Positions 14,181 through 42,618 of a DNA stretch of 64,000 nt are shown here, one piece after another (within the stretch, counting starts at the first letter, position 1; each line of letters starts with the position of its first letter). The stretch is from Oculina patagonica (taxonomy: Eukaryota), in NCBI RefSeq assembly GCF_052425735.1, contig NC_135761.1, forward strand, positions 43,152,001 to 43,216,000. Direction: 5' to 3'. A model generated the notes under the pieces. It did not search any database. It was not told where the DNA came from and worked only from the letters and a program-made list of their open reading frames with translations. The position numbers and the translations under genes were made by a program.

Positions 14181-14256
14181 GATACAATGACATTGTGGAT
14201 CTATCTAGTAAAAGTTGCAAACAAACGTAGTAAAGATGAGAGTGGTTCTAGATTAA

Positions 14257-14677: not shown

Positions 14678-14684
14678 TAAGTGT

Positions 14685-14800
14685 TCGTAGTGGCAGTAAA
14701 ATGCGTAACAGTGACAGCAGTAGTAGCAGCAGCAGCAGCCGAAGCAGTAACAGTAACAGCAGTAGCTGTAGTTGTAGTCGTAGTAGTGGTAATAATAAAT
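14685..14800. repeat. Degenerate (GCA/GTA)n trinucleotide microsatellite
   Basis: Runs of cagcag/tagtag; the homologous, expanded tract is at 51600-52400. Confidence 0.8.
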
Positions 14801-15351
14801 CACTTTATTTGCATGACCGCAATGTTTTACATAATTGCAAAAGCATATCTATCATAATTAACAATACAACAAGGTAGAAATGGGTACAAGTAGACGTTTG
14901 AGTTTGCCTGGGGGCAAACTGCATTGCGGTGACTGGATATAGCAAAGTTCACCAACTTGGATTCGTTTCGGTAAAGAGTCACTTAAGTCGTGACATACAG
15001 TGTATATACCTAGTGTGGGTCAGTTGATGTAGGATAAAAGTGATAAATCATACGTAAAACGTTAGTGCAGAAAATTGTCTTGTAATCGAAATAATATTCG
15101 GCAAACACTCATGATATATAAACCCATAAGTTATCCAAAATAGTTTCCTCAGAATATTTATTACCATTAACTTAATATTTAATAAGAAAGGCAGATAGCA
15201 AAAGAAAAGACAATGTAACCTAGAACTACCAGAAGAAGAATAGAAAGTTTAAGCAAGAACTGTAATGAATGTACAAATAAATTAGTTGAGTTGATAAAGC
15301 ACGAACGGCGAGTTTATGAACACTTGAAAATTTGAAAATATGAAAATTTAA

Positions 15352-19267: not shown

Positions 19268-20492
19268 TTAAAAATATTCCGCGTGCTGAATATAGTTTCT
19301 GACTTCTTCGTCTGTAACTTGAAGGAACGCCTCTTCAACCATCAATTCAGGATCACAGCAAAATTGCCACGCTGCATCATTTTCTCTGATCCAATTTTTA
19401 GCTTGCGCGAAAAGCTCTTCTAATGGCATAAAATCGGGGCTATATGGTGGCAAGAAGATAATCATAGCTCCAGTCGCGTGAATAGCGTCCATAGGTGCCT
19501 GCGAGTGGTGAATCGCCGCATTATCTACAAGAATCATAAAAACAAAAATTAATGGACGCCTCTTTGTTTTGGATTTTAATTTAAACAACACTTTGAAACG
19601 TTCCTTACCTAATATTACCACCGATCGCGGATTCAATCCATTAAATGGAAGCAAATTAGGACAAAGCTTATTCGTCACAAAATCTAGAAACGTCGCGGCA
19701 TTAACATTTCCCTCGTAGATACCAAGGTCTATGATCCCGTCAGTACAAAGGACGGGAATGGCAGTAATACGCGGACCCCAGTTCTGAAAGAACTTTTTTA
19801 CCATTGCTCTTTTTCCAATGGGGCTGCGTCCAGAGGCTCGGGAAATTCTTTTATCCTATAATCATGACACAACAATCAATTTTAGATTTGGAATTCTAGA
19901 ACAAATTTTAACTGAACAAAAAAAATAAGAAAGGAACACTCACGAATCCGCTTTCATCTATAAACACAAACATTTCAGAATTTAACGTGCAAACATTTGC
20001 TCGGAAGATAACTCTTGCTTCTTCAGACCTTTGAAGTGCAATTTTGTTGAGCTATGAAGAGAACAGAGTAAATTTCAGGTTATATGAATGTTTCGTAAGC
20101 CGTGAAAACCAATTCAAAAGCACTTTAATACAAACAAACCTTTTTTCGACTAAAACGATTTCGTCTCAGATAGTAGAAAATGCTTGCCAATGCTAACTCC
20201 GATCCCGTTTGGGAATAAACATCATGAGCCACTTCTGAAAGCGTCTTTTCAGGGTGTTCTAGCACTGCTTCAAAAATCAAAAATTCCACGTGCGGGTGCA
20301 TGGCCACACTTTTTATGGGTCTTCCAATTGTGTTCGCTTTGACTGTACCGTAATTTAACCTTTCGACACATAACGCTCGATAGTTCTTGGGCACATTTGC
20401 AAAACCGCTGCCACTTCATCCAATTCATATCCCAAGATTTCTTTCATCCAAATGGCTCGCCATCGTAGGTCCTCACTGAACGGGCGAGGCAT
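19268..20492 (-). pseudogene. Intron-containing IS630/Tc1-like DD34E transposase (~321 aa); exons 20492-20140, 20051-19944, 19855-19609, 19524-19268; 1-nt frameshift near 20360
   Basis: N-terminal HTH MPRPFSEDLRWRAIW..., then FVFIDESGF, VVILDNAAIHH and FLPPYSPDFMPLEE, with 34 residues between the second D and E. Three GT-AG introns. Exon 1 is 353 nt, one short of in-frame. Confidence 0.9.
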
Positions 20493-21332
20493 GGCTGGTT
20501 TTGATGGGTTTATTTATAAAATATCCCACATAACCTTGCGGTCCTGGCTTTTAGATTTGAGCTTTGATCCGACAACGTTAATTGAAATAGCTGTATTCAC
20601 TCAGCAGGGAATTTGAAATCCAAGTGCATGTGATTTTTTAGGAGTCTTTTACGCAGATATCAACTTCCTTTTTACGACTGAATTTATTCAGGAGTATTGT
20701 GGGTAGCCTTGGTTGGTCGGTTTTCGGTTGGTCCATCATCTGTAAACTTCTCATTGCAACTCCGCTGACCAGCAGATATACTTGTAGAAAGAGTGTAGCA
20801 AGGCGGCCGTATAAAAGCGGCCGTATAAAGGCGGTCTTTTAAATTTAAGGGGTTTACAAGAAAAACCAGAAGCAAAGAAACAAAATATGGCTGACAATTA
20901 CGTGAAGAATTAAGTAATCGACTGCCAAAAAAGTGAACATTGAGAGCCAGTAATCTGCATTAATCGATCGATGACTTTCGTGTCTATCTTTCGAGCTAGC
21001 GTAGTACATGTAGTCGAATGTAGGAGCATTCGAAAACTAAATCGGGTTTCACATAAGCTTCATAAGCGATGGATCTATCTAGAAACCAGAGCGTTGGCTA
21101 AAATCGAGTGCGTGGCTGCTTGTTCCCAAGAAAAGGAAAAGCTTTTCAGATGAAACAGCACAATATTACATTTGTACCTGAATCAGTCTAATATTTTTTT
21201 TTTTACAGCGTTATTACTTAACAGCCTACATGTAAATTATTCTGCAATGCATACCTACGGAGCGATATAATAAACAAACCATTTTAGTACTATGGGTTAA
21301 AAAAAGAAAAAAAAAGGAAAAAAGAAAAAAAC

Positions 21333-21755: not shown

Positions 21756-24700
21756 ATGAATTGTCGGCTGGTTTTCAGAGTTATATTGGTTCTGCTAATA
21801 GCACGACTAGTTTATAACAAAGGTAAGGTTGAAAGCTGAAGAAATCATCATTTGTCTCACTAAATGATCTCGCGTTAAAAAAAGTTTGAACTTTTCATTT
21901 TGTCTGAATTTTCATTTAAATTTAAGGCCGTAAAACGCTCCCTTTTTACTTAAGCTTAGGCATGTAAAAACGTATGGGCTTACCGGAATTTTCGAAGAAA
22001 AGGTTTTGTACAATGGTTTTGCTTTCAGCTCTTTGTTGGTTCTGACGGGTCGTTGTAAAATTCAAGTCAATTTGCATCGATTCATTTTACGGGATGCGCG
22101 CGATAAGTAAAATGAATCGAACAAGAAATAAAACTTAGCTATCGCGGAAAGCCAACTGTAGCGGTAAAAAAATACAAGTTATTGTCTTTTCAATTTATCC
22201 ATAGATGATCCCCATGTGTTCCATAACACAGAAAAAGACGTAAGGGAAAGTAATTTGCCTTTCTTCCAGGTTTGTTCATTAACAGTTAGTTTGGTTACAA
22301 AGCCGGCGAAATGAATTACCGATTAGTTTTCTGTGGTTACTCTCTAAAAAATGTTCGAACTTTAACAAAAGCTGACAAACATTTTATCTTCCTATTCGAG
22401 CATATTATTGCCACTTAAAATATTGAATTATTCACTAAACTTATTTAGAAGCATTTTCCCCCTCCTTTGTTTTAGAATATCGGCATTAAATTCGCAGCAG
22501 CGTTTTTTTATCACCAGTAGTAAAAATTTGCTACCTCTGGCACCAAGATTGAGCGCCACCTAGATGGTGAAAATAATTTATTTAATACATATAATTTATT
22601 TAAAAACGAAGAGGAAAAAAAATTATTTTCCTCTTTTGCATTTTTTTTAAAAGCTGGTTCTCTAACATGAAATAGAAATTGCCCATCCCTGAATGGAATC
22701 GCTAAACATTCTTCTCACAGCTAAAGTGCACAGAGCGTTACCACAAGTCCCACAATATCCATTCATTTATGAAAAGAGAAATTTAACTTTAACATCCCAA
22801 ACCAGGTCTGTGCCAACTGGCTTATACAGTTTAAATGATATAAATTTTGCTATCTGCCATTTATGGCCGTTTTATGAAATATTTGCTTTCTACATGTTGA
22901 AGGTATGACTAAACGGTGTAAAATATTTCTATTTTCAAGACCTTTGTTATCTGCAATTTGCGATGATTTTAACGTTATAGTATTCCAAATAGCAATAAAT
23001 CAATTCCATTTCACTAATTTAAAATAATTTTTCTTTAATGTGCTAGAATGGATACTTTAAGCTCACAGCAGCTTTCAGTTATGACGCCGCGGAGGAATTA
23101 CTTAAAGTTTTTTACTTGGAGGTAAATATTGACGAGATACATACTGTTTTGACTGTTTATTTATCGGGGATTTGTACAAGTTCAATTTGCGTCCAGAAGT
23201 TGACGGCTTACAGTTCGAGTGTTCGTCAAATCACAGCAAAACAGTGATGAATAATTCTAGTATTAGTTCCTGAAAGTACAGCAAAACGAAACAAAACAGT
23301 ACTGAGACACTTACCCGTAATTCCGGACAAATCAACGACGGACGTAGCAAGAGTTCGTTTAACTATACGAAACTATGCGAAACTAGACTGTGCGAAACAC
23401 TAAACTACAATATGAATAAACAAATGTCGAGGCGTGCCCCTTGGAGCTGCACGGGGGCACGCCACATTACGTAAGTTCAGTTCTCGCAGTTTTCTTTGTT
23501 AACACATACAGCCAACAACTCGAAAATTGTTGAACTGAATGCAAGCAGATTACAACATTGCTCCTCATGACAAGCACCGCAAATTTGAAAACAAACTCTC
23601 CCACCGACAGCTAATTTGTCCCTCTTAGCCGGCTGGGCCTGGGGAACGAGGAACAAGTGGCTCTGGAAACACATGATTTGATGGTCAAGATTTTGAACAA
23701 AGAGAATTTAAATCTAGCCAATTAAATCAACCGTAGTAAAATCCATTACAGCACAGGGATTTTAAAACTGTTGATTTGATTGGCTAGATTTAAATTTATT
23801 TTTTGGAAAAACTATCTAATAAAATCATGTGTCCCCAGAGCCACTTGTTCCTCTTGCCCCAGGCTCAGCCGACTAAGAAAGACAAACGGCTCTGAGGACG
23901 TGAATAGTAGTAAATTCCCACCGGGAGCCCCCACTCCCAAACGCCCCAGGTTGGGATAAGATATGGGAAGAGGCGAGCCCAGAGGTGGAAAGGAGCGGGA
24001 GCTACTTAAGGCACAAAGGTGAGCCATCGCTGCGGAGAGGAGGGTGAGGCGACGATCTGAAGTCTGGCGTCCGTTTAAACGAAGAGAGTGAAAAACAGGA
24101 CAAAACAGACCTATTTATACTGAACTAGCCAAAAATTATGCACAGTAGACTCCCTTGAGTATATACAAAAGCAGGGAAGTAAACAAGTGATATCCCAAAG
24201 GAATTAGGGGAATTAGTAACTGCTTACTTCTAAACCGCTTTCAGTGTTCTTTTTTGTGTGTTCTTTTTGTCTAGCTTAAAGCACTTTCCTTGGCTACATT
24301 GCTTACTACTATTCCATTTGGTTATCTATTGGTATGTATAAAAACAGACACAAATTACGTAATTTAGTTATTTCGGATTTATTGAAATAATTTTAAAGTG
24401 ACCCTTTTAATTGAATACCTTTTTGTTTTCTAGGGATGGCTGTTTTTAAAAGCGGTAGGATACAAAGGTACTAACTTTGTCTCTCCACTCACTAATTTGG
24501 CGTTTCGAGCTATCTAATTGGTTCACACTTTGGATATTATATTATAAGTAAAAAACCGACGAGGTTTTTTTCTGATTAAACTAAGAACCTTTCTATCTTA
24601 CTTGAAGATCTCATCTTGGAAACTGAGTATTGCGCCTTAAACTTCAGTGTCGGGTTTTTCAAAGGCGGATTAGCACTAACCCAAGATTAAAAAAAATGAT

Positions 24701-27700
24701 TTAAGGTTCATTTTCGTTTGTATAAATGTGTTTTTATTGCTCAAATATAAATGAAGTTACAACCAAGGAAAAGAAATTAGAAGAGAAAAAACCTCGCTGA
24801 GAATCCCAATCGTGCATTGAACAACCCGGTACAGTAGAGGATTTGTATATTTCTGGTTTGCTGTTTTCTTTAGACAAGGAAAAGGAGAGGCTCCTATTGA
24901 AGGTGACAGAGTATCGGAAACTTTGCATGAAATTGGAGGTAATTACTTCAGCAATTTTTAATTAAGTTACTCTCGAGCTACGCTTCGGAGAGCCATAAGT
25001 TCATGTAATATTAATTTACAAAAAGTGCTATTTTTAGACTATTGAGCCTCCTAAAATTAAACATTTGCACTGATGAAGAGACTAAAATATCAGATTTAAA
25101 GGTTTCAATTTATACTAACTCTTTCATGCTTATAGATTTTGGCCAAATTTCACTGTTCGAAATCTTACAACAGTGAATACAACTTACATTTTAGCAAATA
25201 CTCGCGACAGTGCTGTTTTCGTACCCCCAAAACTCGGCTTCCTTTTTTCAAATAAACTAAGTGGTTAATCGTCAACATAGTTGTATTGTCGCGCCCTAGA
25301 AACTCGTATATTTCTAAAAACGCAAAAGTCTTTAAGTGTTAAGAAATCTGCAATTGGGTATAACATGATACAACAGTTACGCTGGGCAGTTACGCTACAC
25401 AGTTTGCCTCGTCTATTCATCCTTCGACTGTTTAACTTATATTTATATCTTTTTTCTCTTAGAGAGACGTTAACGTGCACAGGCGTGCGCGATTGAACAT
25501 CAGAAATGACCTGGGCAGAGCTAATGCCCGACTTGCAAAACTGGCAAGAGAAAATAAGGTAAGAAGAGTAAGACGGTTAAACAAATAAAACGACTAAATG
25601 AAGAAGGAAAAAATACAAATGATGACAATTGGATAAAGATGTGGTATCTGTATATCTAACACGGGAGACAGTATTTGATCAGGATATCCAAACCCGAAAT
25701 TATAGGTGTTTGAATTACCGATAAACATTTACCTGAAGATATCAGACAGCTGTTTTGATCTAACAACAAACCGATGTGGTACAAATAAAAGTATTTTTCT
25801 TTTTTACTTTAGCTCCCTGTGGCTGACAACAACGAGACTTTTCGTGATGTGGAGGTAAGCTTAAATTTCAGCCGTATTTGTTTCAGAGAAACTCACGAAA
25901 TACAAAGCGTATCAGAAATGATCGCACTACCATGTCTTAGAACAAAATCTAACTGATTTTCACTGAAACATTGTGGGCATTATTGCTGAAATTTAATCCT
26001 CGACCAACGGTTTGTGCCATTTCTGCCGTCAGTCATCTTAGCAGACCTATCGGGAAACAGTAGTTCTCTTCAACCGGTCAAAAGGTCACGTCCGTCAATT
26101 GTGGTTGGTACACTTCAATCCATTTTGTTTATGTCTGTTTATATGGTTTGTTGGCTGTCGCCATAATTATGATTGACGGCAGCAAAAAAACGAAATCGTT
26201 AGTTTGCTTTGAATTTCAGTGTTTGCATATCACTGAAAACCGCAATAATGGGAGCTTTTATTGAGGAGAAGAAAGAAAAAACTGAGAAGTAAGGTTTAAA
26301 ATATGTAAGTTAGGTATGTTACCTGCCCGATTTCAAGGACAGTGGTTTGTTGGCTTGCTTTGGTGAGCACTGACTGCTCTAAAGTGACTCATTAATACAT
26401 CGGAGAGGTTTTGATGTATTAAACTTGTTTTTTTGTGCTGTTCTTCCCTGCAAAATATTGATTTCAGTTTAGATTTCAACAACAGTTTGTCCGTACCAAG
26501 TCAACTTTTAAACAAAACATTCAAGTTATTTTGGAATAGATAGAGACAAGTTTTTGGTTAATTACAAAAACAAACAAACCAACCAACCAACGAACTAACA
26601 AAAGCTGACAAATATTGCACTCCAAACTGAAGGTCTCAGTAATGAACTATCTGCATTAATACTTTTTTTCTTAGATCTTAATGTTGAAGGCTGAAGCTTT
26701 TAAAAGCGAACGGAAATTGGGAAGTGCATTAAAAGAGGTAAGGTCTCAGATGTCCACCAATTGGTGTCATGTGTACTTTTTTTTAAACATAATAACCCTG
26801 AGATTGAGATTGACCGCGCTCTATCCGATACACATCAATAAGTTGCCACGTATCCAGCGTGGTTGACCCAATGGTGTAGTGGATATCACGCCTGACTAGT
26901 ACAGGGAGACGCGGGTTCGAATCCTGTTCGGGGCATGCAATTTTTCTTTCATTGCAGAGACGTCTTTCGAAAGCCATCTGTAATTTATTTACATCTTTCT
27001 TTTTAACCCTGAGATTATTCTAAGGAAACTAACCTTGTGCTGTTATTCTGCCAGTAAATCACATAATCATTTCACTAACCTAGTTTGGAAACCTTGATTT
27101 TTAGCAAAAAATAGATAAGCGTGCTCTCTTTAGACTAAATAGTTTGTGATTAACTTTCTGCATTACATTAATCTTTTTAGACAGCCATGTTGAAGGAGGA
27201 AAATGCGAAAAGTCAAAGTAAACTAAAGGATGCCCTAGACGAGGTGAAGTTTATGAAAGTCTACAAACTGGTGACATTTCACTTTGCTTTAATTATCCGA
27301 GCTTCGTTTATACCTAAGCTTTTTCTTTCTTTACAGAAAAAAGTAACAGATACCCCTTAGAATAGGGTCAATATGACGTTAATATATCCAACGAGACAGA
27401 TCTGCCTAAAGGGCCCCTCTACTCTTACGACTAGTTGACATTCAATTGTTGGGAATAATACCCTAATTCTAAATTTTTCAGGACAAGGGAGAAATAACAT
27501 TTAATCAGTAACAAAAAAAATGCGCGTTTTTGGATTTTATGACGTATAATTGTTTCCCAATCGTCTCACACAAAAGATCCTCCAATAAAAGCAACCATTC
27601 ACGTCATAAATTTAGCTTCTGGCTTGAATCGGTCATCGAAGAGGCCAACGATGCCAACATGGTTGACCCCGATGATAATGAAGACAACCTCGTCCCCAAG

Positions 27701-30700
27701 TCGAGCGGGGGGGGGGGGGGGGGCCCTTCCCGTTCTGAAGGGAAAAACACCCTGGGGATGAGGTTGCGATAAAGAAATCGATATCGAACTAGCCTATGCA
27801 TTAGCGCAGAATAGATTTTTCTTCCACTCACAAACTCTGTTTTCTTTCGTACTCCGCGAGCAAACTACGCGTCTTATTTGTTTCGTTGACGTTGTAACAG
27901 TTAAAGTGAAATAAACGCCTAATATCTATTTAACGCCCCTCCTAGGACCTCTATAATTTAATAGAGACCCCGGGCGTTTATTTAAGGTATATACCATCTA
28001 ATCAAAACAAATTGCGTTGTTAATCTCTTGTGTCCAGCTCTCTGAGGTTTCCGACAATGAGGCAACTGTCAGGGTAGAGGTAGGTTGAATTGTCTTTTTT
28101 GGTTAGCGCCAGGAAAGTACTCCTAAAACAAAAAGTGAGACAAAAATGAACATGATATAATCATAATATTAATTTGAATTTATGTTTTTGTTACCTCTAG
28201 TTGGCCTTAGCTAAAGCCAAACTTGACATTATGAATCAACAAGCCTCAAAATTCGAGAAAGAGGTATATTTTAATTTGTCTTTTCTTTAATTGCAAACGG
28301 ACGAATTCCCTTGCTGTGAATTATTTGATAACGTTATGTCGAGAGGAGGAAACAAGTGGCAGATGTGAAAAATCTATACATGTATCTCTAATATAAAGAT
28401 AAGTAGTGCTGTCCTTACTGTTCGAGTCTAGACCATTGTATTTCTCCGCATAACGCACTAATTTTTAGCTAGAATAAGATATTAGAGTGATACAGATATT
28501 GACGGAAGTTGTTTTGCACGCGTGGAAAACAATGTGTGGACAAAAATGTGTGCACGGAAGTTGTAGAACGGAAGTAATTTTACATGCTACCCCTCCCCCC
28601 CCCCTTAGTGACGTCAAAGCAGAGACCCTTCCCGCCGATTTTCATCATGACTGAGTTGCAGACATTCATTTACAATGTATCTTAAGCAAGATAAAAGACG
28701 CCTTGAAACCCCAAATAAAAATATATTAGCACTAGTGGTGGTCTCACCATCATTTTTGCCCAACTGTTGTATTTTATGGGTTTGTGTGCCAGGCTATGGC
28801 CCACTTAATAAAACTAATTCAATTAAGCTAATCCAAGAAAGTTATGGCAATCCAATCATTTATCTTTTAAAGATTTTCTTCAATGGTTAAGAATTGGCTA
28901 TTCCAACTTAGCCCTTGCTATTTCAAACTGTTACTTGTCTCCCTTTAACACTGTTTACATTCAGTTTATTTAAAAACCCAAAAAAACATGAATGAGCTGG
29001 CTCAAGAGCCCTTTTATTGTAATTTAGTTTCTTACGATCTGTTACACTATAAATTATTAACCACACTTTTGAACATCTCATTTGTTATAGACAATTGTAT
29101 TGAAGGGTAAAGCTGCTAAAACTCATAGGCAGTTTCAAGATGCGGAAACCGAGGTATAGTCGAAAATCGAGTGTGTCGCATATATAAAGCGCCCAAGCCC
29201 AACGCGGACAGTCACAAATAGTGTGCTGCTACGCTAAGGCTTCGCAGCAAAAGTGTGAAAAAATGAACATGATATCATCATAATATTAATTTGAATTTAT
29301 GTTTTTGTCACCTCTAGTTGGCCTTAGCTAAGGCCAAACTTGACATTATGGATGAGCAAGCTTTAAAATTCGAGGAAGAGGTATTTTTAAAATTTGTCTT
29401 CACTTTAATTGCAAATGGACGAATTCCTTTGCTGTGAATTATTTGATAACGTTGTGTCAAAAGGAGGAAACAAGTGGCAGATGTGAAAAATCTATACATG
29501 TGTCTGTAATTTTTAGTTAAGTAGTGCTGTGCTTACTGTTCGAGTCCAGACTATTGTATTTTTCCACAAAATTTTCTGTTTTTTGTAATTTAGTTTCTCA
29601 CGTCCTCTTACAATATAAATTATTAACCACACGTTTGAACATCTTATTTGTTATAGACAATCTTATTTAAAAAAAAAGCTGCTCAAACTCAAAGGCAGTT
29701 TGAAGATGCGAGAAACGAGGTAAAACTTCTACATGACATCAAATCTAGTTTTCAACCTATTTCACCCATTGTACTGTAGGCTCAGCGTGAGGTGCGACAA
29801 GGAACGGTTGTAAACAAAAGAAGTTCAATTCTCCAGTCCAAATATTCCAGGCTTCTGCATATGGCGAAAGACTGTACCATCTTTTAAAAGCTTATTTCGT
29901 TATTTTTTTGTTTAGCTCCTAGTGGTGTCCGACAATGTGGCAACTGTTAGGGTGGATGTTAGTTCAAAGTTTATTTGGCGCTAAGAACGTACTCCTGAAA
30001 CAAAGTAAAAAAATAACATAACATTAGAAAAAACGCTACTAACGCTCCTAGCAAAGAATAGTTTTTATCTTACTCATTTTCGATTAAACGTTTTAAACAG
30101 TCGGTAGTACTTTTAAGAAAAATACAATCGTAAAAATGTAAATGACGCTATTAAAGAATTTTATCTAATTCTTTAACTTCAAGGCTTCTTAAAGAAGCCT
30201 TGAAGTAAAAGAATCAGGTAATTCTTTTTTTAAAGTTTCTCTACTGTATTATTGCAAAAGGACAAATTCCACTTTCAAAGTTAAGAAGAGACTTTTATCA
30301 GGGCAATGTTCCAGGCAGTATCGGAAGAAATTGCGTTTGTTAGGAAATATCTACGAATTAAAAAGTAAATATAAAAATAAACAAACAAATAAATGAATGA
30401 ATGAATGAATGAATGAATAAACAAATTAGTACAATTAAGGACTTTCGCTTCCGTAAATACATATATAGTGCATATTTTGTGCTCCTCTCATAAGTACTCT
30501 GTAGTGATATTCTCACTTTTTACAAGACTCCTTCAGTTCTACTTTAGCTCTATCAGAGCTTATCCCTCCTGCTCACTCACTACCATTAGGTATTGGGTAG
30601 CAGTCCCCTGTCTAAAAAAAATAGAGAAGTTATGTCAAGGGAGTAAGAGTAGCAGGTGGAGTTGTGGGTCGGAGGCTTCGACCTTTCTGCCAACGCTTTC

Positions 30701-33700
30701 AGCTACTGAAAGCTGCTCGATTTTGCTTAATATAATGCTAAGTGACGTCACCAAAGATGTCAATGAGCTATGAAAGAAAACTGCTATTAACATCATCTTG
30801 TAAGTTTTAGTTTGCCAGGTCAAATGGTGAAAGAAAAAGCAGAGACCTGCAATTTAATTTACTATAAATAAAAGCTGCTTTTTACACCATTCTGTATGTT
30901 CCAGATTGCCAGGTCAGCTTTATCAAGTTCTGTCTCTTTCTTTCGTCTTTAATTAAAAGAAAAAAGAAAGAGTTAGAACTTGATAAAGCTGAGAAAGAGG
31001 TTCATGCTATGACTTAAGACATATATTCAGCTTATTCGATTAAGATTTTGGAAAAAAGCACAGAAGTGCACGCGGCAAGACCGAAAGATAGTATGGGTAG
31101 AAGTAGAGAGCTACTGCAAGCGCTGAATACTAATAAGACGTGAATTTGCATGTTTTCTTTCTCATACGTGTGAAAAAAGTACTTCTAGGCACGCTGAAGT
31201 TTAGAAGAATTTTCAATACTCAAAAATACATGTTACAGTAAAAGTAAAACTACAGAAAAAGGCCTCATGAGAGGAAAAATCCTTGACGTCTAAAAATACC
31301 AATCTGTAAATTTCCTCCAGGCTAATATGCAGATTTTAGTGAATTCCAAGACCACCTTTCGGTCTTGCCGCGTACACTTATGTCTTTTTTATGACAAACT
31401 TTCTCTCGAACTGGATATAAACAATTGTTGGACTGCATTTCGCAACTTAATTTTTATGAAATTAGTTCGTTCTTTGCGCATAAAACTGATTTCAAAATTT
31501 GGTGATTTTTTAGGATGCTTGATTTTCTTCTTTGACTTTTCAATTTCACGGTTTTAAATTTAACTGTGAAAATGAAAAGTTTAAGAAGAAATTGGCAAGG
31601 TTCTAAAAACGAAGGGATGCGTTCCTGCAGTTAATGTTTTCCCATTCAGGTAGCTGCAATATACCAAATAATGCCGTGAGCCTCAGTAATTATCCATTAC
31701 ATATTATACTCCCTATATCGAAATGTTTGTGTTAATTTCTAGCTTAAAAGTTGTGTGACATTTGTTCATTTTTTATAACGCTTTAAATATTTTAATAATC
31801 TGGTGACTTTCTGGCCGCCCGATTTTCTTCTTTGCTTCATCTTTCATTTTTACTAATCAAACTGTGGAAATGAAAAGGAAAGAGGAATTGCAAAAGGCTT
31901 AGAGTTTGATAATATGGGGGCGATATGTTGCGTTATAAACAAGTAACGGAGGGTGAAGGCGGCTGGGTTAGATTATTTGAAGGATCACTGAGGTCAGAGG
32001 GCACTGACTTTGTTAACAGCATAACTGAACAGGAGAATAGGCGGTTTGGGTGAAAGAAACAAGCTAAAGGCCTAAACGTTCTTTTCCATACGTTCATCCC
32101 CCACGCTTACTTATAATTAATTTCGGTCTCTTTCAGGTTACCCGGTTAAAGTTGGAAAAGAAGAATATGGTGAAAGAACTAGAAGAAACTAATAACGAGG
32201 TGATAAATTTGTTCACTTTAAATGCAAAAGAAATAACAGAAGCTTATTCCTCCCGCTCACTCACTAGCAAAAGGTATTTGGTAGCAGTCCCCTGTTTGGG
32301 AAATCAAGATAAGGTATGCCGAGGGAAAAAGACCAGCAAGGGGAATGGTGGGCGGGGGGCTTCGCCTTTCTGTCAACGCTCTCAGTAACTGAAAATTCTT
32401 ATTTATTTTGCTCAGGGGGAGGGGGAGGGTAAGAGGGGGGGGGGGGGTGACTCTACTCTTTACAGTGATTTATTCGTGACCGAATCATCACTGCTAGTAT
32501 GATGTCACATGGTATCGAGAGAGCGATTTGCTCTTAGGCAAGATACCTGTCTCTCTCAACCCAGATGTACAAATGGTTATAGGAGCTATTTTATTTCTGG
32601 GGGTAGCCGTGCGATGAACTAGTATCCTGTCAAGAGTGTAAGGCTTATTATTTAGTCACCTCATGATACTTGAGCTGGGATGGGCTCTGGGCTAAAGCCA
32701 CGAGGCGCGCACGCACTGGACAGTTATTTACAATGATTAATAACGCCAGCAGGAATGCTTATCAACTTTAGATAGAAAAAAAAAACAGTTTACATGTCAT
32801 GTGTTATGTTTCAGGTGGCCAGGTCCAATGATGAAAGGGAAAAAGTAAAACTGGAATTTTCAATTTCTAAGAAAGAGGTAATGTCTTTAAAATATATATT
32901 TAAACGCGAAGACTTGGGTGATGGTATTTGCCCTCGACCAAAATTTTAATCTCTAGATTGAACTTGTTATGTTTATTTCTGTCTTTTGTTTTATGAAATT
33001 AGTTCATTCTTTACTTCGCTCTGTAGTTATTTTAAAAATTTGGAGATTTTCAGGCTGCGCGATTTCCTGCTTTGCCTTTTCAAAAAACTCTGTTTCAGGT
33101 TAGCCGGTTAAAGCGTGAAAATGAGGAGATCGTGAAAGAACAAGAAGCAATTAAGAACGAGGTAATAAATTTGTTCACTTATAAATGCAAATGAAAAATT
33201 CTGGGAAAAATATAAATAATATTTAAAGAGAGTTATATTTGGGGAGGTGGAATTTCAACAATGAAGTACCTCATGCAATGTGTGAAGTAACGAGGGAATT
33301 GAAGGACAAATGTCAGTAAACATCAGTAAGAACAAACTATTTTGACACTTAAAGCAAGACCCTATAACTGGTGATCAAGTGTTACATTTTTAACTAATGG
33401 CTGTCTTGATCATGAACATTCCGTGCTTTTTCTAGTATTCTTCTACATTTGATGTTTTTCAGGGTGCTTGATAATATCGTGAAAGTAAAAATGCCAATAT
33501 CTCTTCCTTTGCATTTGCCAGTTTATTCTTGACAACTGCTAAGAGTAAGATAAAAAAATAACATAAATTTAAAGGAGAGTGACGGCTGCTGTGGCGAAAG
33601 GCAGACTTATTTGTAAAGGTGCAATGATTTTGGCTGTTTCAAGACAGTTTACGTTGACAGAACGTTATTTCAAAGAGCACTGTTCTGCCCTTTATTGACG

Positions 33701-36700
33701 TCTAACGAGTCTGTGTTATAGAATGCTAAGTGACAGAAATGCATACGAACTTTAAATACAAAAGAATGTTTTCAATATCATCTTGTGTGTTTTAGTTGGC
33801 CAGGTCCAATGTCGAAAATGAGAAAAGAGAAGTACAATTAACAAAAGCTATGGAGGAGGTAACGTCTTTGAGATTAGTTTTGATATAAAATTTAAAGACT
33901 GCAGGACTTGAAAAACTGAATATTGACCTGGGTGGTGGTATTTTGCCCTAGATCTAGAATGCAACTCATAGATTGAAAAGAAAAAAGATTAACCTTAAGA
34001 TGTCTTATCCATTAGGATGGCCCACAGATTTCAATTGTTTAGAATCATATGCAGCATCTGGTAGCTCAGTGAGGTTTTCTAAAAAAACAAACAAACAAAC
34101 ACATATATAAATAAACAATGCTATTAATAAGGTGTTATTACTTTCAGCTAAACAAAGTTAATAATGCTGTCATGCAGAGGGACAAGGAACTGATTGTTGT
34201 TAAGAGCGAGGTAATGACATTAAAATGTGTACTCTTAAAGTACAGGGAAATTGGGTGGTTAAAAGAAGGGGCTCAAAATGATGTTGTACCTTTTTAGTGT
34301 AAAAATAAGAAACTGGTATGAATACTGAAATAAGGACTAAAGCAAAGTAGATATGGCTTGTCAACACGTTAATCGAATGCAAAGTGGAACTGAGTTAAAA
34401 AATAAAAAAAGATCAACCTTATAATGTCTTATTAACTAGTATGGCCCATGATTATCAATATTGCTTAAACTCTTATGCGGCATCTGGTAGCTGAATAAGG
34501 TTTTCTCAAACAAACAAACAAACAAACAAACAAATAAACAAAAACGTTAATAAATAAACAATGCTAATAATAAAGTGTTACTACTTTCAGTTGAACAAAG
34601 TTAACAATGCTGTTATGCAGAAGGACAAGGAACTGATAATTGCTAAGAGCAAGGTAATGACATTCAAATGTGTAGTCTTGTAGTCTTATTATATTATTAT
34701 TAAGGTCTTACATGTAGTGAAAGATAGAACAACAAGAAATGAGCTTTAAATGGCTAATATGAATCTAAGTCTAAAATGGAGAAACAGACAGCAGATAAAA
34801 ATAAGCTTTTTCCCACGTACACTTTGTTATACTGAATTCGGTCATTCTCCATAGTAACTAATAATTTCAATTTATATTTTATAAGTTCAAATTGTAATTT
34901 AACTACAAAAGTGGTCGCCAGTGAAACCTTACTGATCTGAAGACTTCAATCAAGTCTCGTAGATTGCCATGGATTTCGAAAACTTTCACTTCCAAATTAC
35001 TTCCATGGAAAAACAATTTTAGATATCTGCTTAACATTTAAGTGGACGTTTCAATTTTCAATGCAACTTTAACATTAATGATTTTGATATCAAGTCCATT
35101 TTTTATTCATAAATGCTGCTGTGGTGGTCTGAATTTCACCTCAAAACCTGTAACGGAAATTACATCTTTCGACTAGATATATAAAAATAATTAAGCTGCT
35201 AATATGAAAAAAAAGACTGAAAAATGTTTACAAAAAGGTATAGTTTTGTAAATGTCAGTGGTCCCTTTCGCCAAAATGTCATCTGAACACATCTAATTTG
35301 GCGTTATTGGTGCATTTTTTTATATTTTTAACCAAGGAGTATTCCTTTAATAAAATGGGTTTGTTTTTGTTGATATTCTGAAGATTCTTTTCAGTGATGA
35401 AAAATTATTAAGAATTGGCTTTGGATTTTCTTTGCTTTACTTTTAAAAACGTTTTTTTTCCTGAGTTGCGAAACTCACGGTGCGGCTTCTTTGCCGGTGC
35501 GGCTTATCTGCGGGTGTTGTTTCAAAGGCATCTCGTTGACTGTTTGACTGTTAACTCGTGTTCAGTTGCATTTTGTCCGAGAAGAGAAATTGTTGACATG
35601 CATTATCAAAAACTCAGGCAAATTCTTCTTTCTTTACTTAACAATTAACTGTTATTAATGATGTTTGATTCTTTTTAGATTACGTCGTTAAATGACGAAG
35701 CAGCTAATATGAAAAAGAAATTGGCTTACGCAAACAACAAGGTAAAGTTTTGTAGATGGCTGCGGTGCCTTTCGCTAGGCTTTCAAAAATGGCTTTTTGT
35801 TACTCTTAAAGATCAGCGTAATTCAAGCATTATAACGAAAGTCACAAGTAGACAAATCGACATTTGGCTATATATTACCTTTAAAGTTTTTTCTTCGGTT
35901 GGACAGCGTAAACATTTTGAGGTAGTTAGGGAGAGTTTTTCTTTGACAAAGGGTGTTTGGTTTGCTGGTTTTGTAGGAAGGGACCTTATTAAAGTTCTTT
36001 TAGTTCTGGCATGACTGTTTAGAAGGATGTGCAGTTGTACACCTTTAACATATTTGATAACAAATAAAATTTGTCATCCCTTTATTCTCGATTTGTGTTT
36101 TTGATTGTTAAACGTTTTGCGTTCCCTGGCTCACGTAGCCGCACTGTTTGAGACAACATGGTGGTTGAATGGCTACTTTGGGTTAAACTACAGTCTGATA
36201 CCTTATCGATCAATTAGCTGGCAACGTTCAGAGCTAGCATATGTTTTAGCAAATTTTTATGTAATATAAATTGAAGTTGATGTGACAACCATGAAAGGAG
36301 TTCAGAGAAGTCATAAGATTACTCCATTCAAATATGCAGATCCGACACGCAATATGCTGCAAGACTTCCACTCTTGCGTTACATTCAAAGGTGAAATTCA
36401 CTTCTAGTGTACCATTATGATGCACTATTCGGGCTGGCCAATCACATCCCCCTTTTCTATTATGTCAATCAAGACCATGCGGTTTTATCTAGACATGAGT
36501 AGTTTAACTCTAATTTAATTCTTTGAGCTCCCTGGAAGAGTTTGCACTTGTTTCCATTAATTGACTGTTTAACAGCTAATCTTTGGAAATGGTTTTATCT
36601 ATATTTATAAAAGTTAACGTTCAAGAAAAGATTAATTTCTTGGTGATATCCTTACTAAATTAACTAGAAAAAAGACATGAACGTTAATTTTTAAAAAAAG

Positions 36701-37891
36701 ATTTAGCTATTATCAATAACATTTCGTTTTTTGCAGATCGCCTCGTTGAACAACGACATTGACAGAAAAGTAAAAGAACTAGCAAACGCACTTAATGAGG
36801 TAAGGATTTGTTTAGCCCCCTTTGTTACCATTAACAGTGACACCGAAAGATAGAAATTGATAAAAATGTATTTTTTCAACATAAAAGATCGTCTTTTTTG
36901 ATACAAATTGGCATAGTAAACCTACAGATGTAAAGTGGTTACAATGAAGACCAAGCGCTAACTCAGTTATGAATGATGTAAATGATTTATCTGTTGTGCA
37001 ACGCTTGATAAAAAAAAGGTTGAAAAACATTTCTTCCTTCCAAACTTATTGCTTTGGCGCAAAAATTCAGAAAAAAAGTATTCCTAGAACCTTATTGTTA
37101 CTTACTTTCACAGGACCTTAATTTCGCGAAAAAGAAATGTGCATATTTCGCGGGACTTAATTCTTGCGATTAGGCCAAAAAATACGTTGAAACAATAACG
37201 ATAATTTGAAAATCGCGAAAATTAAGTCCCGCGAAAATAAGTAACAATAAGGTAGCCATACACTTTTCTCGCAGATTAATATGACTTTACTTTTTTGAAT
37301 CATAATGTATGGTAATATTATGACAGGTTTTGCAAACCAGGAAGAAAGATTGCAACAACTGTAAGATGTTACGGTATGTACATTTAAGTAACATTTAATG
37401 TGGCACTTTGTTTTAATTTTAATTTTATTAAGTTTACAACACCTACATTTTCTGTTTGCATTTTTTGTTTCAGGTAAATGTCTTTAACTTTCACAAAATC
37501 ATAAATGGATTATTAAGTTTAAACAGTGAAAACACTTATACGATTTTGTCTTATTCCGTTTGTTTCGTAATGTTAATTTCGATTCAAAAATTAAACAATT
37601 CGAAGATCGTCAGAAATGCTCCTCCGCGCCACTCTCCTCTCATCGCTTGCAAATGCGATGAAGCATTAGTTTTCCTTTTCTTTTAATATATTACTTGAAA
37701 GAGGATTATGGATAAGTCTAGTATTTTGCTTGGCCTCCGCCTGATTAAACTTTCTTCTGATTTTTTTTTTATTTTGCTCTAACCACTTTAGAAAGCTAAA
37801 CGAGAAATTGAGATTGGAATGTGAAACTGAGGACAAGTTCCGAAGGGCTCAAGTAAGTGGTTTTGTTTTACGGAAAGTAACTATTTGCTAT

Positions 37892-37922
<31 letters not shown>

Positions 37923-37924
37923 TT

Positions 37925-37961
<37 letters not shown>

Positions 37962-39133
37962 GCTCATAGAAAACGAGGGCGAGTAGTCTAGTTGTTTTAG
38001 TAGAAACTCTAAAGGATTGCAGTCCGAAACCTACAATATTTTCCACTTTGATAAGAAAAATCAAGAAAATTTACCGCTTAAAAAGCTACGCGCGCGCGAC
38101 TGTTTTCTATCGGCGAATAGAAAACAGTGGGAGAACCAATCAGATTCGCGGATTTCCAATAGAACACAGCTGAGTTTTTACTAAATAAAGGTAATGTTGT
38201 CTCTAAATGAAATGAAATAAATCAGAGAAGAATGAAGAATGAAGAATGGTTATTGTCGTTGAATAACGTTGCTTAAACAACAAAATCAACATAAAAAAAT
38301 AAAAAATAAAAAACAAGATTGGCTTGTTCAATGGAAACAGAGAGTCCATTCTTGCAGCTCTTATTAAAGACCTTCTGTCAGTATGGAGGAGATATATATT
38401 TTTCATGTATTACAGGACGGGATGGTTGTCTTTAGAGATCAATGTAAAAGGTTACTTTCGTATCGTGGAGTAATATTTAATATCGAATTTTTTTATTTTA
38501 GCTAAACAAAGTCAGATTGCAGGCTGATGTTCATTTGGTGAGTAAAACAATTACATTGTATTATTATTTTTGATCTTTTTCTGAAAGCAAAGAAAATGAA
38601 AGAAAACTGTGATTTGATATTCTTATTCTGTCAAGGATTTTTTGGTATATGGTAAAACGGTCCTCGAAATTAATCAAAAAGTACTTGTAATGCAACAAGT
38701 CGGGTACACATTGCTCAATTTTAAGTATTCTCTTAAACTAATCATCTCTTTTTTTAGCAAATGGTAAATGACCACAAATGGCAGAACGACGTTCTACGAC
38801 AAAGGTAAGATTAATGACAGTGAATTTAAGCCATCATGGTTTAGAAGTTCCTTTAATATTAAGGTCATTGCCCCGAAATAGAACTGAACATAGATTTTCA
38901 ACCAAACTTTGCCTACTTGTTGATTACCGTAAGGAGACTTAAATATTGAAATAACCAAGTGGGGTCCCCATGTTCGTTTAGGAGCGGAAGACCTTGTATA
39001 TAACCCCATTATTCCTTAATAATTATCTTGGTACTACTGGTAAACATTTCCTGTGATAATTTATTTTTCAAACAAAGGAATTGATCTGTTTTCGTTTTAC
39101 AGAAAGAACTTGAACGCTACAACCAAAATATGA
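21756..39133 (+). CDS. Multi-exon membrane protein (~560 aa): signal peptide, short ectodomain, one TM segment and a long modular coiled coil. Exons 21756-21822, 22205-22269, 23047-23121, 24275-24331, 24434-24467, 24874-24938, 25463-25558, 25813-25854, 26675-26737, 27181-27243, 28038-28079, 28201-28263, 29091-29153, 29318-29380, 29657-29719, 29916-29957, 32137-32199, 32815-32877, 33099-33161, 33796-33858, 34148-34210, 34591-34653, 35679-35741, 36737-36799, 37327-37373, 37792-37852, 38502-38537, 38758-38804, 39103-39133 (last exon uncertain)
   Basis: Each exon has an AG acceptor (mostly after a pyrimidine-rich tract) and a GT donor, and phases join without stops. N-terminus MNCRLVFRVILVLLIARLV; TM ALSLATLLTTIPFGYLLGWLFL. 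Exons 1-6 and 8 are conserved with matching phases and near-identical lengths in the paralog at 56018+, while introns have diverged. Confidence 0.82.
23600..23905. mobile_element. Fold-back (near-palindromic) MITE in an intron
   Basis: cttagccggctgggcctggggaacgaggaacaagtggctctgg pairs with ccagagccacttgttcctcttgccccaggctcagccgactaag; inner arms aaatctagccaattaaatcaac / gttgatttgattggctagattt. Confidence 0.8.
26806..27003. mobile_element. Short insertion containing a tRNA-like sequence (~26864-26934), flanked by a 13-bp direct repeat
   Basis: taaccctgagatt at 26793-26805 and 27004-27016; internal tggtgtagtgg (A box) and gggttcgaatcc (B box); non-canonical anticodon arm. Confidence 0.7.
30811..31000 (+). 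pseudogene. Decayed copies of the 63-nt coiled-coil exon (30811-~30870 with a stop; 30905-31000 with an internal inverted duplication); further remnants near 31550-31615
   Basis: The start ttt/att gcc agg tca resembles intact exons 32815 and 33796; each reads into a TAA. Confidence 0.65.
32530..32700 (+). mobile_element. Decayed SINE body fragment
   Basis: ggcaagatacc..ctctctcaacccagatgtacaaatgg..gggggtagccgtgcgatgaactag resembles the conserved body of tRNA-derived metazoan SINEs (recognition only). Confidence 0.45.
37089..37254. mobile_element. Small MITE
   Basis: TIR accttattgttactta / taagtaacaataaggt with internal ttcgcg motifs. Confidence 0.7.
37889..38187. mobile_element. Non-autonomous element with a long terminal hairpin
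   Basis: aacaattagactac..gagcgatagtcaac(tcggctgcgcctc)gttgactatcgctc..gtagtctagttgtt hairpin; ttagtagaaactc / gagtttttactaa inverted pair. Confidence 0.65.
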
Positions 39134-41599
39134 GAAAAAAATGACAGGTGCCCATACTCGTTCACGAGAAAGAGACGACCAACTTTTCTCTCGGACTAAG
39201 CCGCATAGAAAAAAGCCGCCATGTAATGCGCAATGTAATACAGGGCAATGATCTGGAAAGCTTTACCCTAGTCATTTTAAAAAAATTAACAAATCATCTC
39301 TGTCAAAGTTGATTTTTTTTTAATTTTATGGCCGATAAGGTTAAAAACGAGAGTATTTATTGATTTTCGAGACACTGTGGTGGGTCTCGATTGGGCAAAG
39401 TATGTAGTACCTCCTAACGCAGCCAAAATGTCATTTTCCATCAAACGAAAACTGTTTTCGTCTAGCCTCGGTTAACCGTTGCAGTGAGCAATGTTTAAAG
39501 AAGAACTATTTTTGACGCAAACTCAATGGGGTGGTTTTCACAGTGATAGCCTTTTAAAGTAAAAAAGAATGTTTGAATTGTTTCTTAGTTTTAGTTTGCC
39601 TTTGTCTCCTCTTGTCTAGTCTAACATCTCAAGCGAAAATAAAAATATCTCATATCTTTCAGAAAGCTAGACAATTGTAATCTGTGAATGCGAGTAAAGT
39701 TAGCAGGAGGTGGTCCTCATCTCGAGTTTGAAAGCAAATAATTTTTTAGTGTAATAGCTCATAGTAACCTTCATGTATGCTCTTATTCTTTAGGTTGAAC
39801 GGTTTAACCCTGCAATCTGCACCATATAAACCACCGTGATTCATTTTCCGCTCTGCCGAATAATTTTACATAAAGTTTTCTAGCAATTTGAACAATGTTT
39901 TTATTGAATTGCGTTTATTTTGTAAAGTTTATCGTTGGACTGTAAACACCTTGCCAGGTGTTCACTGGAAACAACAATTCATAGTTTGAGTAAGTTCTCT
40001 AAATGTTTCAAATAAAATATTTTACACGTGTTGTATGTACTTTTCTTGCGTCGAATTCGTGAGATTTTCCTCCCCGGGGGGCCGGGAAAGGGGGGGGGGG
40101 CGAAAGGAGGAAAACTCAGGATCCCACAAAATCTAATTTCCGACATTACCCCAAAAATCCTAAACCAAAAACCCCAAATAATAACCCTGGGGGGGGAAAA
40201 AAAAAAAAATTTTTTTTATTATATTAAAAAAAAAAACCTTTTCCCCTTCAAAAAACCAAAAAAACAAAACAAAAATCAAAACAACAAACCCCCCCGCTTA
40301 GGAACCCCAAAGAAACCTCACTGCGTAGTTATGACGAGATATAATGAGAAAAGGTAAACGACACTTTTAAAATTTAGAAATGGTTTACTTTATCGATTCA
40401 TGCGTAATTGTATACTTTAGAGTTGTGGTGCACGCGGGAAGTTTAAAGAGTAGGAAAGAAGCGTAAGAGTAGCCGAGAGAAACTGTAGCTTTATAACATT
40501 GCCGGTGGAAATTTACAGCAAACCCGCGCCGCAGAAGAAACAAAAACAATATCAGATGTGATTCTTCACGGGAAAGGAGGGTTGCTTTAGTCCAGTTTTC
40601 TGTTCGAAGCTCCAGTTTTATTTTACTCTCGTTTAAAAACAATTGAATTGCGTTCGACGGTAGGAGAACGCATCCTAATCTTGTGGTGACCTGTGGTTCC
40701 GCAGTTGTCCTGTGAACGCGCAAGCGAAAGTCGTTCTATGTGTCGGTTATGTATGTATGTGGTATGTGGCTAGATGGCCCGATCGTGAGAAGTCATTAGA
40801 AAGAATTAATTGTCAAAATGACATTAGACCGTAAAGAGAGAGCGCGCGCAGAATCAATTCAATTAAGCGGATACCGCTAGGCTGTAAACCTTTTGCATTC
40901 GAGTGTGGCAGTACGTATCCTAATCTTCAGTTGGCGACCTGTAAACACACAAGCGGAAGTCGTTCTAGCTATGTGTCTTTTTGTGAGTGATATTAACCTT
41001 TGTTATAAGGAACTGTGACAGACCCTCTTTGGAAGAATCGTTTTGTGTTAAAACAGTTTCACCAAGTAATCTCTCTTTTTTATTAATTCGTGGGCCCCTT
41101 TTTGCTCCCATCTCATCTTGGGTACCTATCTTGGGTCGAACACACTCCTCTAATCTCTGATTATTACTAGTTTAAAAACATAAACGCTCTAGGAGGGCAC
41201 TTTTATTTCCTGATTGAATACAAATTTCTGTTAACTGTTGAGGAAAGACCGTGCGTTTTATAGCATGCTACATTTTCAGTTTCTGTGAGAGAGTACAATT
41301 CCCACAAAATTTGAACAAGGCGTCAAAATAAGTTAAAATGCTTCAAAAAGTACATCGATTCGCGGAAAAAAGACTGTTACAAAACGGTTTAACATCATGG
41401 GCTAACTTTGAATACAGTAGGAGGACAAGCCTGGTCGGGAATTGGATCTAAGGGTGATACGAACATTTTGAATGGTGCAGTTGTGGAAGAGATATTCAGA
41501 GCCGCTTGTGCTTTTCTCAGTTCCAGTGGACATAACGACGCTGTTTTCCTGAACGTGTTTGAAAATATTTGTGGCGAAAACAGCAAGAAATTTGGATCT

Positions 41600-42250
41600 G
41601 CCGAAGCTTTTCGTAGTCTCTTCGAAGAAGGTCGTAAATTAGTCGTGGTTTCCGCGTTTGATCTACCATCTTTGTTCTGCCGTCGCTATAACAGCGAACA
41701 TAACGGTTTTTGGGTTTATTGTTGTTTTTTTTTAAAATGGTTAAAAAAAAAAAAAAATTTTTATAATTAACGGGGCAATAAGTCACTTGAGTCAGATGTA
41801 CCCAATATTTCACTCAGAAAAAGTCCCGTATCTACCAGTAATGGGAAACTAAAAAGCCAGCAAACGTCCAGGTGAGTAGGATGGCTATTCAGCGCGAATC
41901 TTGGTTGAAATAAACCCAAGCTTTATTTCGAAAACGATGGCGACAAATCTATTAGCTGCTTTCCACACCAAGCTTTTAGCCGAAACAAAGATTGACATTA
42001 ACCTTGAGTTGGTTACCAATTAGGTTATTTCAACAAGCAATACCAACAGCGGAAAAAGACAAATCCGACGCAGCCATGCCTGTTCACGATAAAATAGTTA
42101 ATTGGCTTTCGTAAATGTCGGTGTTTGTTGATAATGATGATTACGAAGGTGTTCCCAAGAAAACTGTCCAGCAAAATCAGATACGCAAAGAGTTTTATTG
42201 CTCCAGTGAAGTTTTGTTCTAAATTTCTGGGATCGTGTTGTTGTTTCTCA
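41600..42250 (-). pseudogene. Heavily decayed GPCR-A pseudogene (paralog of 1193-2332)
   Basis: Minus-strand remnants LGNTFVIIII..HRHLRK, LVWKAANRFVAIVF and RQNKDGRSNAETT..SSKRLRKA align to GPCR-A with deletions and frameshifts. Confidence 0.8.
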
Positions 42251-42618
42251 GGGTTGAGATGATGAGCCAGCCTTGATAGTTGACTCGAGTGATAGAATTG
42301 TTGAGGTTGCTTTTAGGCAGTCTTTAGAAACGGCAAGAAGATAAATAAAAAACAGACTTACGGGCAAATGAGCAAGAAATACCACAGCTGAAAGAAACAT
42401 TTGAGCGGTTCACAAAGCACCTTTTAAATCGTTCTCGATTCTTTAAGCTATATTGGTCTCTCAATCTTGGCTCGAACGTCTTTTGTTCTGTTAAAATATC
42501 GCATAACGCTATTAAATGTAAACATAATTAGTTTGCTGTACTTACATTTTTAAACATTTATTTGCGAACAATTTTTTGTCCATTTGCTCTTCCTGCCCTT
42601 TGTATCATGAAAATATCA

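Follow-up and report, generated by a model that had tools for sequence, protein, structure and literature searches.

LOC144650221 of the coral Oculina patagonica probably encodes a membrane-anchored helical rod built from 63- and 42-nucleotide exons

CD23 is a membrane-anchored protein whose α-helical coiled-coil stalk follows a heptad pattern (PMC6791321, PMC2212946). Here we analysed a gene of comparable exon architecture in the stony coral Oculina patagonica, LOC144650221, which lies on the plus strand of a stretch of 64,000 nucleotides (nt) from a 529-Mb genome (NCBI RefSeq assembly GCF_052425735.1, contig NC_135761.1, hereafter C4; C4:43152001-43216000). This whole stretch is called the window, and positions are counted from its first letter unless they carry the prefix C4. 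In the CD23 gene (FCER2), each stalk repeat of 21 amino acids (aa) occupies its own 63-nt exon, and the number of repeats differs between human and mouse. Fibrillar collagen genes contain long arrays of phase-0 exons of 54 bp. Each exon measures a whole number of structural repeats, and the arrays were built up by tandem duplication of exons. The micro-exon genes (MEGs) of schistosomes, built mostly of exons of 6-36 nt, encode small, secreted and largely unstructured proteins and show extensive, documented exon skipping. Kinectin, CLIMP-63 and the golgins are single-pass anchors with long coiled-coil rods that serve as tethers or spacers, and kinectin has short, alternatively spliced coiled-coil cassettes. 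Interaptin of Dictyostelium combines an N-terminal actin-binding domain with a C-terminal transmembrane (TM) helix.

A scan of the plus strand for stop-free frames of 42 or 63 nt bounded by AG and GT recovered all of the 17 symmetric exons that a sequence-only reading of this DNA had described, fourteen of 63 nt and three of 42 nt, each of phase 0-0 and together in one continuous frame. They end in GAG|GT in 14 of the 17 cases and amount to 336 aa or 48 heptads. When the fourteen 21-aa exons were stacked, the hydrophobic residues concentrated at positions 1, 4, 8, (11), 15 and 18, and therefore every array exon begins on heptad position a; in consequence a single register runs through all 48 heptads, and each exon is an exact block of three or two heptads. 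Over the 336 concatenated residues, position a is hydrophobic in 37/48 heptads and position d in 35/48, and the period-3.5 signal reaches z = 9.4 against shuffled sequences. The hallmark of an α-helical coiled coil, an uninterrupted a/d hydrophobic periodicity within a helical segment, is present. A chance pattern of open reading frames (ORFs) was excluded by window statistics: among stop-free AG|63 nt|GT windows, a filter for hydrophobic a/d positions and no Pro, Cys or Trp was passed by 10 of the 23 windows inside the array span, compared to 0/26 elsewhere on the plus strand and 1/46 on the minus strand. An origin of the array from a transposon or satellite was also rejected, the intronic repeats being separate elements.

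Compared to CD23, the coral gene shares the arrangement of one 21-aa repeat per exon, with fourteen 63-nt exons in register, and the resemblance is one of gene architecture only. CD23 is a type II protein: its stalk is extracellular, is encoded by only 3-4 repeat exons and bears a C-type lectin head. The coral gene has 17 such exons, and its product lacks a head domain, starts with a signal-peptide-like segment and probably has its rod in the cytoplasm. A Pfam scan found no C-type lectin domain at the C-terminus of the coral protein, and homologue, Pfam and PDB searches revealed no sequence relation to CD23 or to the necks of type II C-type-lectin receptors. As in the collagens, gain or loss of an exon keeps both the frame and the structural register. 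By contrast, the collagen unit is the 9-nt Gly-X-Y repeat of a triple helix and the coral unit the 21-nt heptad of an α-helical rod, in proteins of unrelated family and cellular location.

The gene is already annotated in RefSeq, as an uncharacterised locus. Among 1.84 billion representative proteins, its 32-aa exon at 25463-25558 matched, with 100% identity, the 497-aa protein XP_078366000.1, recorded as uncharacterized protein LOC144650221 isoform X2; isoform X1 (511 aa) belongs to the same protein cluster. Mapped back onto the window, X1 gave 27 coding exons, with a signal-peptide-like exon, two segment exons, two TM exons and two rod exons upstream of the array, 14 array exons (twelve of 63 nt and two of 42 nt), four conserved tail exons and a short last exon. 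The product accordingly runs from a signal-peptide-like segment through a conserved segment of ~47 aa, one TM helix and a rod of ~400 aa to a conserved 63-aa C-terminal module with a CxxC motif; the 17 array exons account for 336 of the ~400 rod residues. The membrane anchor proposed in the sequence-only reading, a signal-peptide-like exon, a short segment and a TM helix, is present and conserved in the paralogs.

Exon 1 (21756-21822), with a phase-1 end, carries the start codon and encodes a hydrophobic segment resembling a signal peptide, MNCRLVFRVILVLLIARLVYNK; it forms the N-terminus of both X1 and X2, and all four paralogs retain it along with the GTAAG donor. A second, decayed copy of this exon (MNYRLVF...), which has no donor, lies ~550 nt further downstream at 22311-22400 and is also kept in the paralog LOC144650244. 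The short luminal or extracellular segment starts in exon 2 (22205-22269; DDPHVFHNTEKD), a block mapped from X1 and retained in the paralogs and in the Orbicella faveolata relative described below, and is completed by exon 3 (23047-23121; NGYFKLTAAFS..., 75 nt, phase 0-0), likewise mapped from X1 and kept in Orbicella and LOC144650244. Exon 4 (24275-24331; LKALSLATLLTTIPFGYLL), in which Kyte-Doolittle windows exceed 1.4, encodes the first part of the 22-residue TM helix and is kept in all four paralogs and Orbicella; exon 5 (24434-24467, phase-1 end) encodes the end of the helix and its basic flank, GWLFLKAVGYK. The rod starts in exon 6 (24874-24938; DKEKERLLLKVTEYRKLCMKLE). Exons 5 and 6 were both placed by X1 mapping, by the paralogs and by a Logan contig of another coral; this DNA contig has the same TM and early rod exons. 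The 32-aa rod exon 7 (25463-25558), with which the protein match was obtained, bears the conserved motif RRAR..RNDLGRANARL and is kept in Orbicella.

Within the array, 16 of the 17 exons are used in at least one public gene model. Exon 1 of the array (25813-25854; 42 nt, LPVADNNETFRDVE) is in all three models, and exons 2 (26675-26737) and 3 (27181-27243), both of 63 nt, were placed by the scan and by gene-model mapping. Exon 4 (28038-28079; 42 nt, LSEVSDNEATVRVE) is a cassette exon, contained in X1 and absent from X2. The 63-nt exons 5 (28201-28263), a recent duplicate of the exon at 29318, and 6 (29091-29153), a duplicate of the exon at 29657 in a duplication of 85% identity, occur only in the submitter's GenBank model; exon 7 (29318-29380; 63 nt) is in all gene models, and exon 8 (29657-29719; 63 nt) is in X1 and X2 and missing from the GenBank model. 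Exon 9 (29916-29957; 42 nt, LLVVSDNVATVRVD) has an open frame with AG and GT, a weak donor (GAT|GTTAGT) and a place in no public model, and is possibly a decaying exon. The remaining exons are all of 63 nt. Scan and gene-model mapping agree on exons 10 (32137-32199, 84% identical to its duplicate at 33099), 11 (32815-32877), 12 (33099-33161) and 13 (33796-33858), and self-comparison adds to them for exons 14 (34148-34210, a duplicate of 34591) and 15 (34591-34653). Exon 16 (35679-35741) is joined to exon 17 (36737-36799) by a GT..AG joint, 35741|36737, in RNA-like runs, and exon 17 has copies in two paralogs.

Behind the array, the exon at 37327-37373 (phase-2 end), mapped from X1 and kept in Orbicella and the paralogs, carries the conserved CxxC motif VLQTRKKDCNNCKML. 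It belongs to the RefSeq structure, which replaced a candidate acceptor at 37796. The conserved tail continues with the exons at 37792-37852 (..DKFRRAQ; X1 mapping and joint 37852|38502), 38502-38537 (LNKVRLQADVHL; joints 37852|38502 and 38537|38758) and 38758-38804 (QMVNDHKWQNDVLRQ; phase-2 end, joint 38537|38758, kept in Orbicella). The last coding exon of the RefSeq models (39794-39839), placed by X1 mapping, encodes LNGLTLQSAPYKPP followed by the stop codon, and a candidate alternative acceptor at 39103, proposed from sequence alone, would give a different C-terminal end of 10 aa. The protein stops 14 aa past the conserved helical tail and has no Pfam domain, and a C-terminal globular domain was rejected, none being present before the next gene, a G protein-coupled receptor (GPCR) gene on the minus strand at 42558-43756.

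The very high contig depth at 37100-37300, 37900-38300 and 38700-39300, seen in all four public runs compared, and the inverted-repeat joints near 37922-37960 look like high-copy repeats resembling miniature inverted-repeat transposable elements in introns of the 3' part of the gene. Just past the 3' end, long G, A, T and C homopolymer tracts at 40060-40310 might reflect poor assembly quality or a simple repeat that has degenerated.

The signal-peptide-like exon in all paralogs and the one TM helix, which is followed immediately by basic residues (KAVGYKDKEKER) in a product of 497-511 aa, together predict a cytoplasmic rod: given a cleaved signal peptide and a single TM helix, the rod would probably lie in the cytoplasm, which speaks against an extracellular ruler. 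In an alternative topology, the first hydrophobic segment would not be a functional signal peptide and the TM helix would act as a type II signal anchor, so that the rod would form an extracellular stalk like that of CD23 or of class A scavenger receptors, without a head. The signal-peptide-like segment does lack a clean A-x-A cleavage site, and two arginines occur in it; on the other hand, the N-terminal hydrophobic exon, with its MNxR n-region and 12-residue core, recurs in all four paralogs, and in one of them (up1) small residues form a good cleavage motif, VGS|V. The Orbicella model has no signal-peptide exon, though that locus has large gaps. The conserved cysteines of rod and tail (CxxC) could form interchain disulfides, as would suit a stalk, but the sequences of the rod contain no conserved N-glycosylation sequon and the basic residues directly behind the TM helix are as for a cytoplasmic flank. 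We regard the extracellular stalk as unlikely and favour the cytoplasmic rod.

When the monomer was modelled by AlphaFold2 from an alignment of four sequences, residues 100-502 were predicted to be helical, with brief interruptions at 152-159, 213-216 and 291-303; the mean predicted local distance difference test score was 63. The breaks at 152-159 and 213-216 sit in two of the three 14-aa exons, one of them array exon 1. A homodimer prediction for residues 154-433 returned no verdict, neither for nor against. The sequence-only reading had put the length of the rod at up to roughly 50 nm; the arithmetic is right, with 336 aa at ~0.15 nm per residue, but it assumes a rod free of hinges, and the low-confidence model breaks the helix. 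Searches of Pfam, NCBIfam and PDB sequences yielded only sub-threshold coiled-coil matches and no globular domain. The best NCBIfam rows were SMC proteins, whose scores of 24-36 bits, against cut-offs of 567-729, reflect coiled-coil arms only; membership in the SMC family was rejected as the scores lie far under the cut-offs. A feature search of the ESM Atlas found nothing at ≥0.9.

The coral protein is like kinectin, CLIMP-63 and the golgins in being an N-terminally anchored coiled-coil rod, by analogy only: Pfam, homologue and ESM Atlas searches found no similarity to any of them, and to our knowledge their genes contain no heptad-quantised exon arrays. With interaptin it has in common a long coiled coil on a membrane anchor. 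The automatic name of the Orbicella relative, which would place the family with interaptin and the α-actinin superfamily, was rejected, the Pfam scan having found no CH domain, the N-terminus consisting of a signal-peptide-like segment and a TM helix, and a C-terminal TM helix being absent; the label 'interaptin-like' reflects coiled-coil composition only. A literature search on 'interaptin-like' proteins in corals and on heptad-sized exon arrays found nothing pertinent.

Splicing was followed in public sequencing runs and in the available gene models. The whole array as a query listed no run with a match, whereas the 3' end of the gene retrieved DNA-like and RNA-like runs of related corals. 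Contigs from four runs were compared with 33700-39699 only, a region that covers 4 of the 16 within-array junctions. In the RNA-like runs X11 and X16 of a related coral, contigs contained the GT..AG joints 35741|36737, 37852|38502 and 38537|38758; the DNA-like runs X6 and X10 lacked these three joints, and their contigs covered the introns instead. Splicing in the related coral thus follows the prediction at a minimum of one array junction and two tail junctions. RefSeq isoforms X1 and X2 differ solely by the 42-nt exon at 28038-28079, and in LOC144650244 two differences separate isoforms X2 and X3, namely the homologous 42-nt exon and an alternative acceptor of 15 nt. The model that the submitter placed in GenBank (570 aa) takes the exons at 28201 and 29091, omits that at 29657 and reads through an intron; because of this read-through it is weak evidence for isoforms.

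The sequence-only reading had gone further and proposed a combinatorially variable molecular ruler, in which the 63- and 42-nt exons would be skipped in many combinations across cells or conditions, giving graded rod lengths that tune the distance from membrane to target. The exons would permit this, as every one of them is of phase 0-0 and register-neutral, and the isoform pair of each of the two genes does differ by one 42-nt exon; yet this amounts to one annotated cassette event per gene, in a 14-aa exon and not in the 21-aa exons. Two annotation pipelines picked different exon subsets, but the deviating GenBank model, with its obvious intron read-through, is unreliable for isoforms. No skipping of 63-nt exons was seen among the joints shown by the RNA-like runs across 33700-39699, and a search for translated transcript fragments spanning the variable exons found none. 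With two RefSeq isoforms and three confirmed junctions, combinatorial splicing was not borne out, and we hold such regulation to be improbable. What is annotated is a 14-aa cassette exon, and isoform variation within the gene is at most modest.

The likeness to the schistosome MEGs that had been suggested comes down to exon symmetry, runs of symmetric exons that can be skipped with the frame kept; an N-terminal signal peptide and lineage-restricted, clustered families are also common to both. The likeness ends at exon size and product: MEGs have symmetric exons of ~6-36 nt and a small secreted product that has no membrane anchor, whereas the coral exons measure 42 or 63 nt and the coral protein, of 497-511 aa, is for the most part a regular helical, intracellular-looking rod behind a TM helix.

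The region from C4:43.05 to 43.23 Mb contains four tandem copies of the gene, with duplicated GPCR and PAN-domain genes interspersed among them; the signal-peptide-like and TM exons are conserved in all four. As the sequence-only reading had asked, exon number was compared across paralogs and species: approximately 17, 16 and 7-8 exons, each of 63 or 42 nt, make up the paralog arrays, and the exon types differ from one array to another. When the N- and C-terminal modules served as queries, the matches fell almost exclusively in this cluster; the sole match outside it, on the same chromosome, was weak (E 0.006). Homologue searches with the whole protein and with its N-terminal 160 aa among 5.8 billion proteins revealed nothing beyond Oculina and one 580-aa 'interaptin-like' protein of Orbicella faveolata (37% identity), which we take to be a putative ortholog; so far as these searches indicate, the family appears to be confined to corals. 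The Orbicella locus likewise has 17 array exons, fourteen of 63 nt and three of 42 nt, with the same a/d pattern, and its exon types were expanded within the Orbicella lineage. Identity between the two genera is 59% over the N-terminal 153 aa and 62% over the C-terminal 63 aa, compared to 33% over the array.

Of the 57 kb spanned by the Orbicella model (MZGG01001650.1, reversed, 3001-60216), 25.9 kb is N; the first exon annotated there, 26 kb upstream, encodes no signal peptide, and the true first exon is probably inside a gap. The RefSeq models of LOC144650244 (paralog up2, C4:43052001 + 19274-20651) run into the intron behind the second LQRSDD exon and stop there (...VHVMF). Downstream of that end are the conserved tail and six or more additional 63-nt exons. 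The annotation is probably truncated, or the gene split.

The array has grown and shrunk through tandem exon duplication and exon death. Self-comparison aligned 28131-28453 with 29249-29571 (90% identity), 29013-29156 with 29579-29722 (85%), 32127-32233 with 33089-33196 (84%) and 33981-34236 with 34405-34679 (80%). The longest intron (2.2 kb, 29958-32136) contains dead copies of two exon types on the plus strand: xARSN-type copies at approximately 30768-30990, one with a 32-nt insertion, recognised by self-BLAST and by alignment to the exons at 32815 and 33796, and a VSRLK-type copy at approximately 31545-31625, aligned to the exons at 33099 and 32137, which has lost its splice sites and has a broken frame. 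In LOC144650244 and Orbicella, a LALxKAKL exon follows each SDNEAT-type 42-nt exon, the type homologous to those at 28038 and 29916, and this LALxKAKL exon is missing here. That exons can be lost or gained with frame and register preserved, as the sequence-only reading had held, is evident from X1 and X2, from the differing exon sets of the paralogs and Orbicella, and from the duplications and dead copies; on comparison of these sequences, exon-modular evolution of rod length is well supported.

An intronic element with a G/C run that would encode poly-Gly or poly-Pro recurs at 27600-27830, 30557-30711 and 32241-32480, and also occurs outside the gene near 2950-3040; it was copied along with exon duplications.

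Over six duplicate exon pairs, the ratio of nonsynonymous to synonymous changes (pN/pS) was ~0.65, and exon identity (0.80) was only slightly above that of the flanking introns (0.74); the rod sequence is therefore weakly constrained. Such values would also fit a fast-evolving, largely dispensable, lineage-specific cluster, in which the exon sizes simply result from one 63-nt exon having been tandemly duplicated repeatedly, length not being under selection. The dead exons, the truncated RefSeq models of LOC144650244 and the confinement of the family to one segmentally duplicated cluster fit this view, but the terminal modules remain 59-62% identical between two coral genera, both genera have kept the a/d pattern and the exact exon lengths despite diverged exon sequences, and transcripts are spliced in a related coral. 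We consider dispensability quite unlikely.

Taken together, we think it rather likely that LOC144650221 is a real coral gene for a membrane-anchored helical heptad rod of 63- and 42-nt exons that serves as a spacer or tether and whose length varies mostly in evolution. In this model, the rod would point into the cytoplasm, given the signal peptide and one TM helix, and would mainly set the distance between two conserved ends that do the specific work; if it is a coiled coil, each 63-nt exon would contribute ~3.1 nm and each 42-nt exon 2.1 nm. Differences in length would be mostly evolutionary, from gene to gene and from species to species, and the isoforms of a single gene would add a modest amount at most. 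Several points weigh against this model. The spliced contigs confirm only 1 of the 16 within-array junctions, and do so in a related species, not in O. patagonica itself; the topology is based on hydrophobicity and on the conserved signal-peptide-like exon, and the spacer or tether function is deduced from the sequence and a predicted structure. The modest AlphaFold2 confidence and the breaks at 14-aa exons suggest that the rod may be segmented instead of forming one ruler, and the weak constraint also fits a rod that is slowly decaying or unimportant.

That one structural repeat may occupy one symmetric exon is already known from the collagens and CD23. What is new is an undescribed, coral-restricted family that represents an unusually pure and dynamic heptad-quantised case. 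The family displays duplicated and dead exons, diverged paralogs and one annotated cassette exon side by side, and it illustrates how a rod-shaped protein can change length with no loss of frame or register. The significance is less than the sequence-only reading had hoped, because the gene is annotated, the principle is known and combinatorial splicing was not borne out here, length tuning by splicing being a doubtful prospect. Four tandem genes with the same end modules and different rod lengths nevertheless provide a natural length series for testing a spacer or tether function in the coral cell. Very tentatively, corals might set tether length in steps of 2-3 nm by exon number, through paralog or haplotype copy number and cassette splicing, while the conserved ends bind fixed partners; if so, the family would be a natural, genetically encoded series of molecular rulers.

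The neighbourhood of the gene (window positions 1-15000 compared to 40000-52000; C4:43.05-43.23 Mb) is a tandem segmental duplication, with one coiled-coil gene following each duplicated unit. On the minus strand, intronless ORFs for rhodopsin-type GPCRs occupy 1193-2332, 3403-3968 and 42558-43756; that at 42558-43756 is split into two ORFs, perhaps by a frameshift. A PAN/apple-like exon with a large conserved exon behind it occurs at 12208-14180 and again at 47734-51489. Two N runs at 51700-52300, which are assembly gaps or masking, are flanked by low-complexity triplet repeats.

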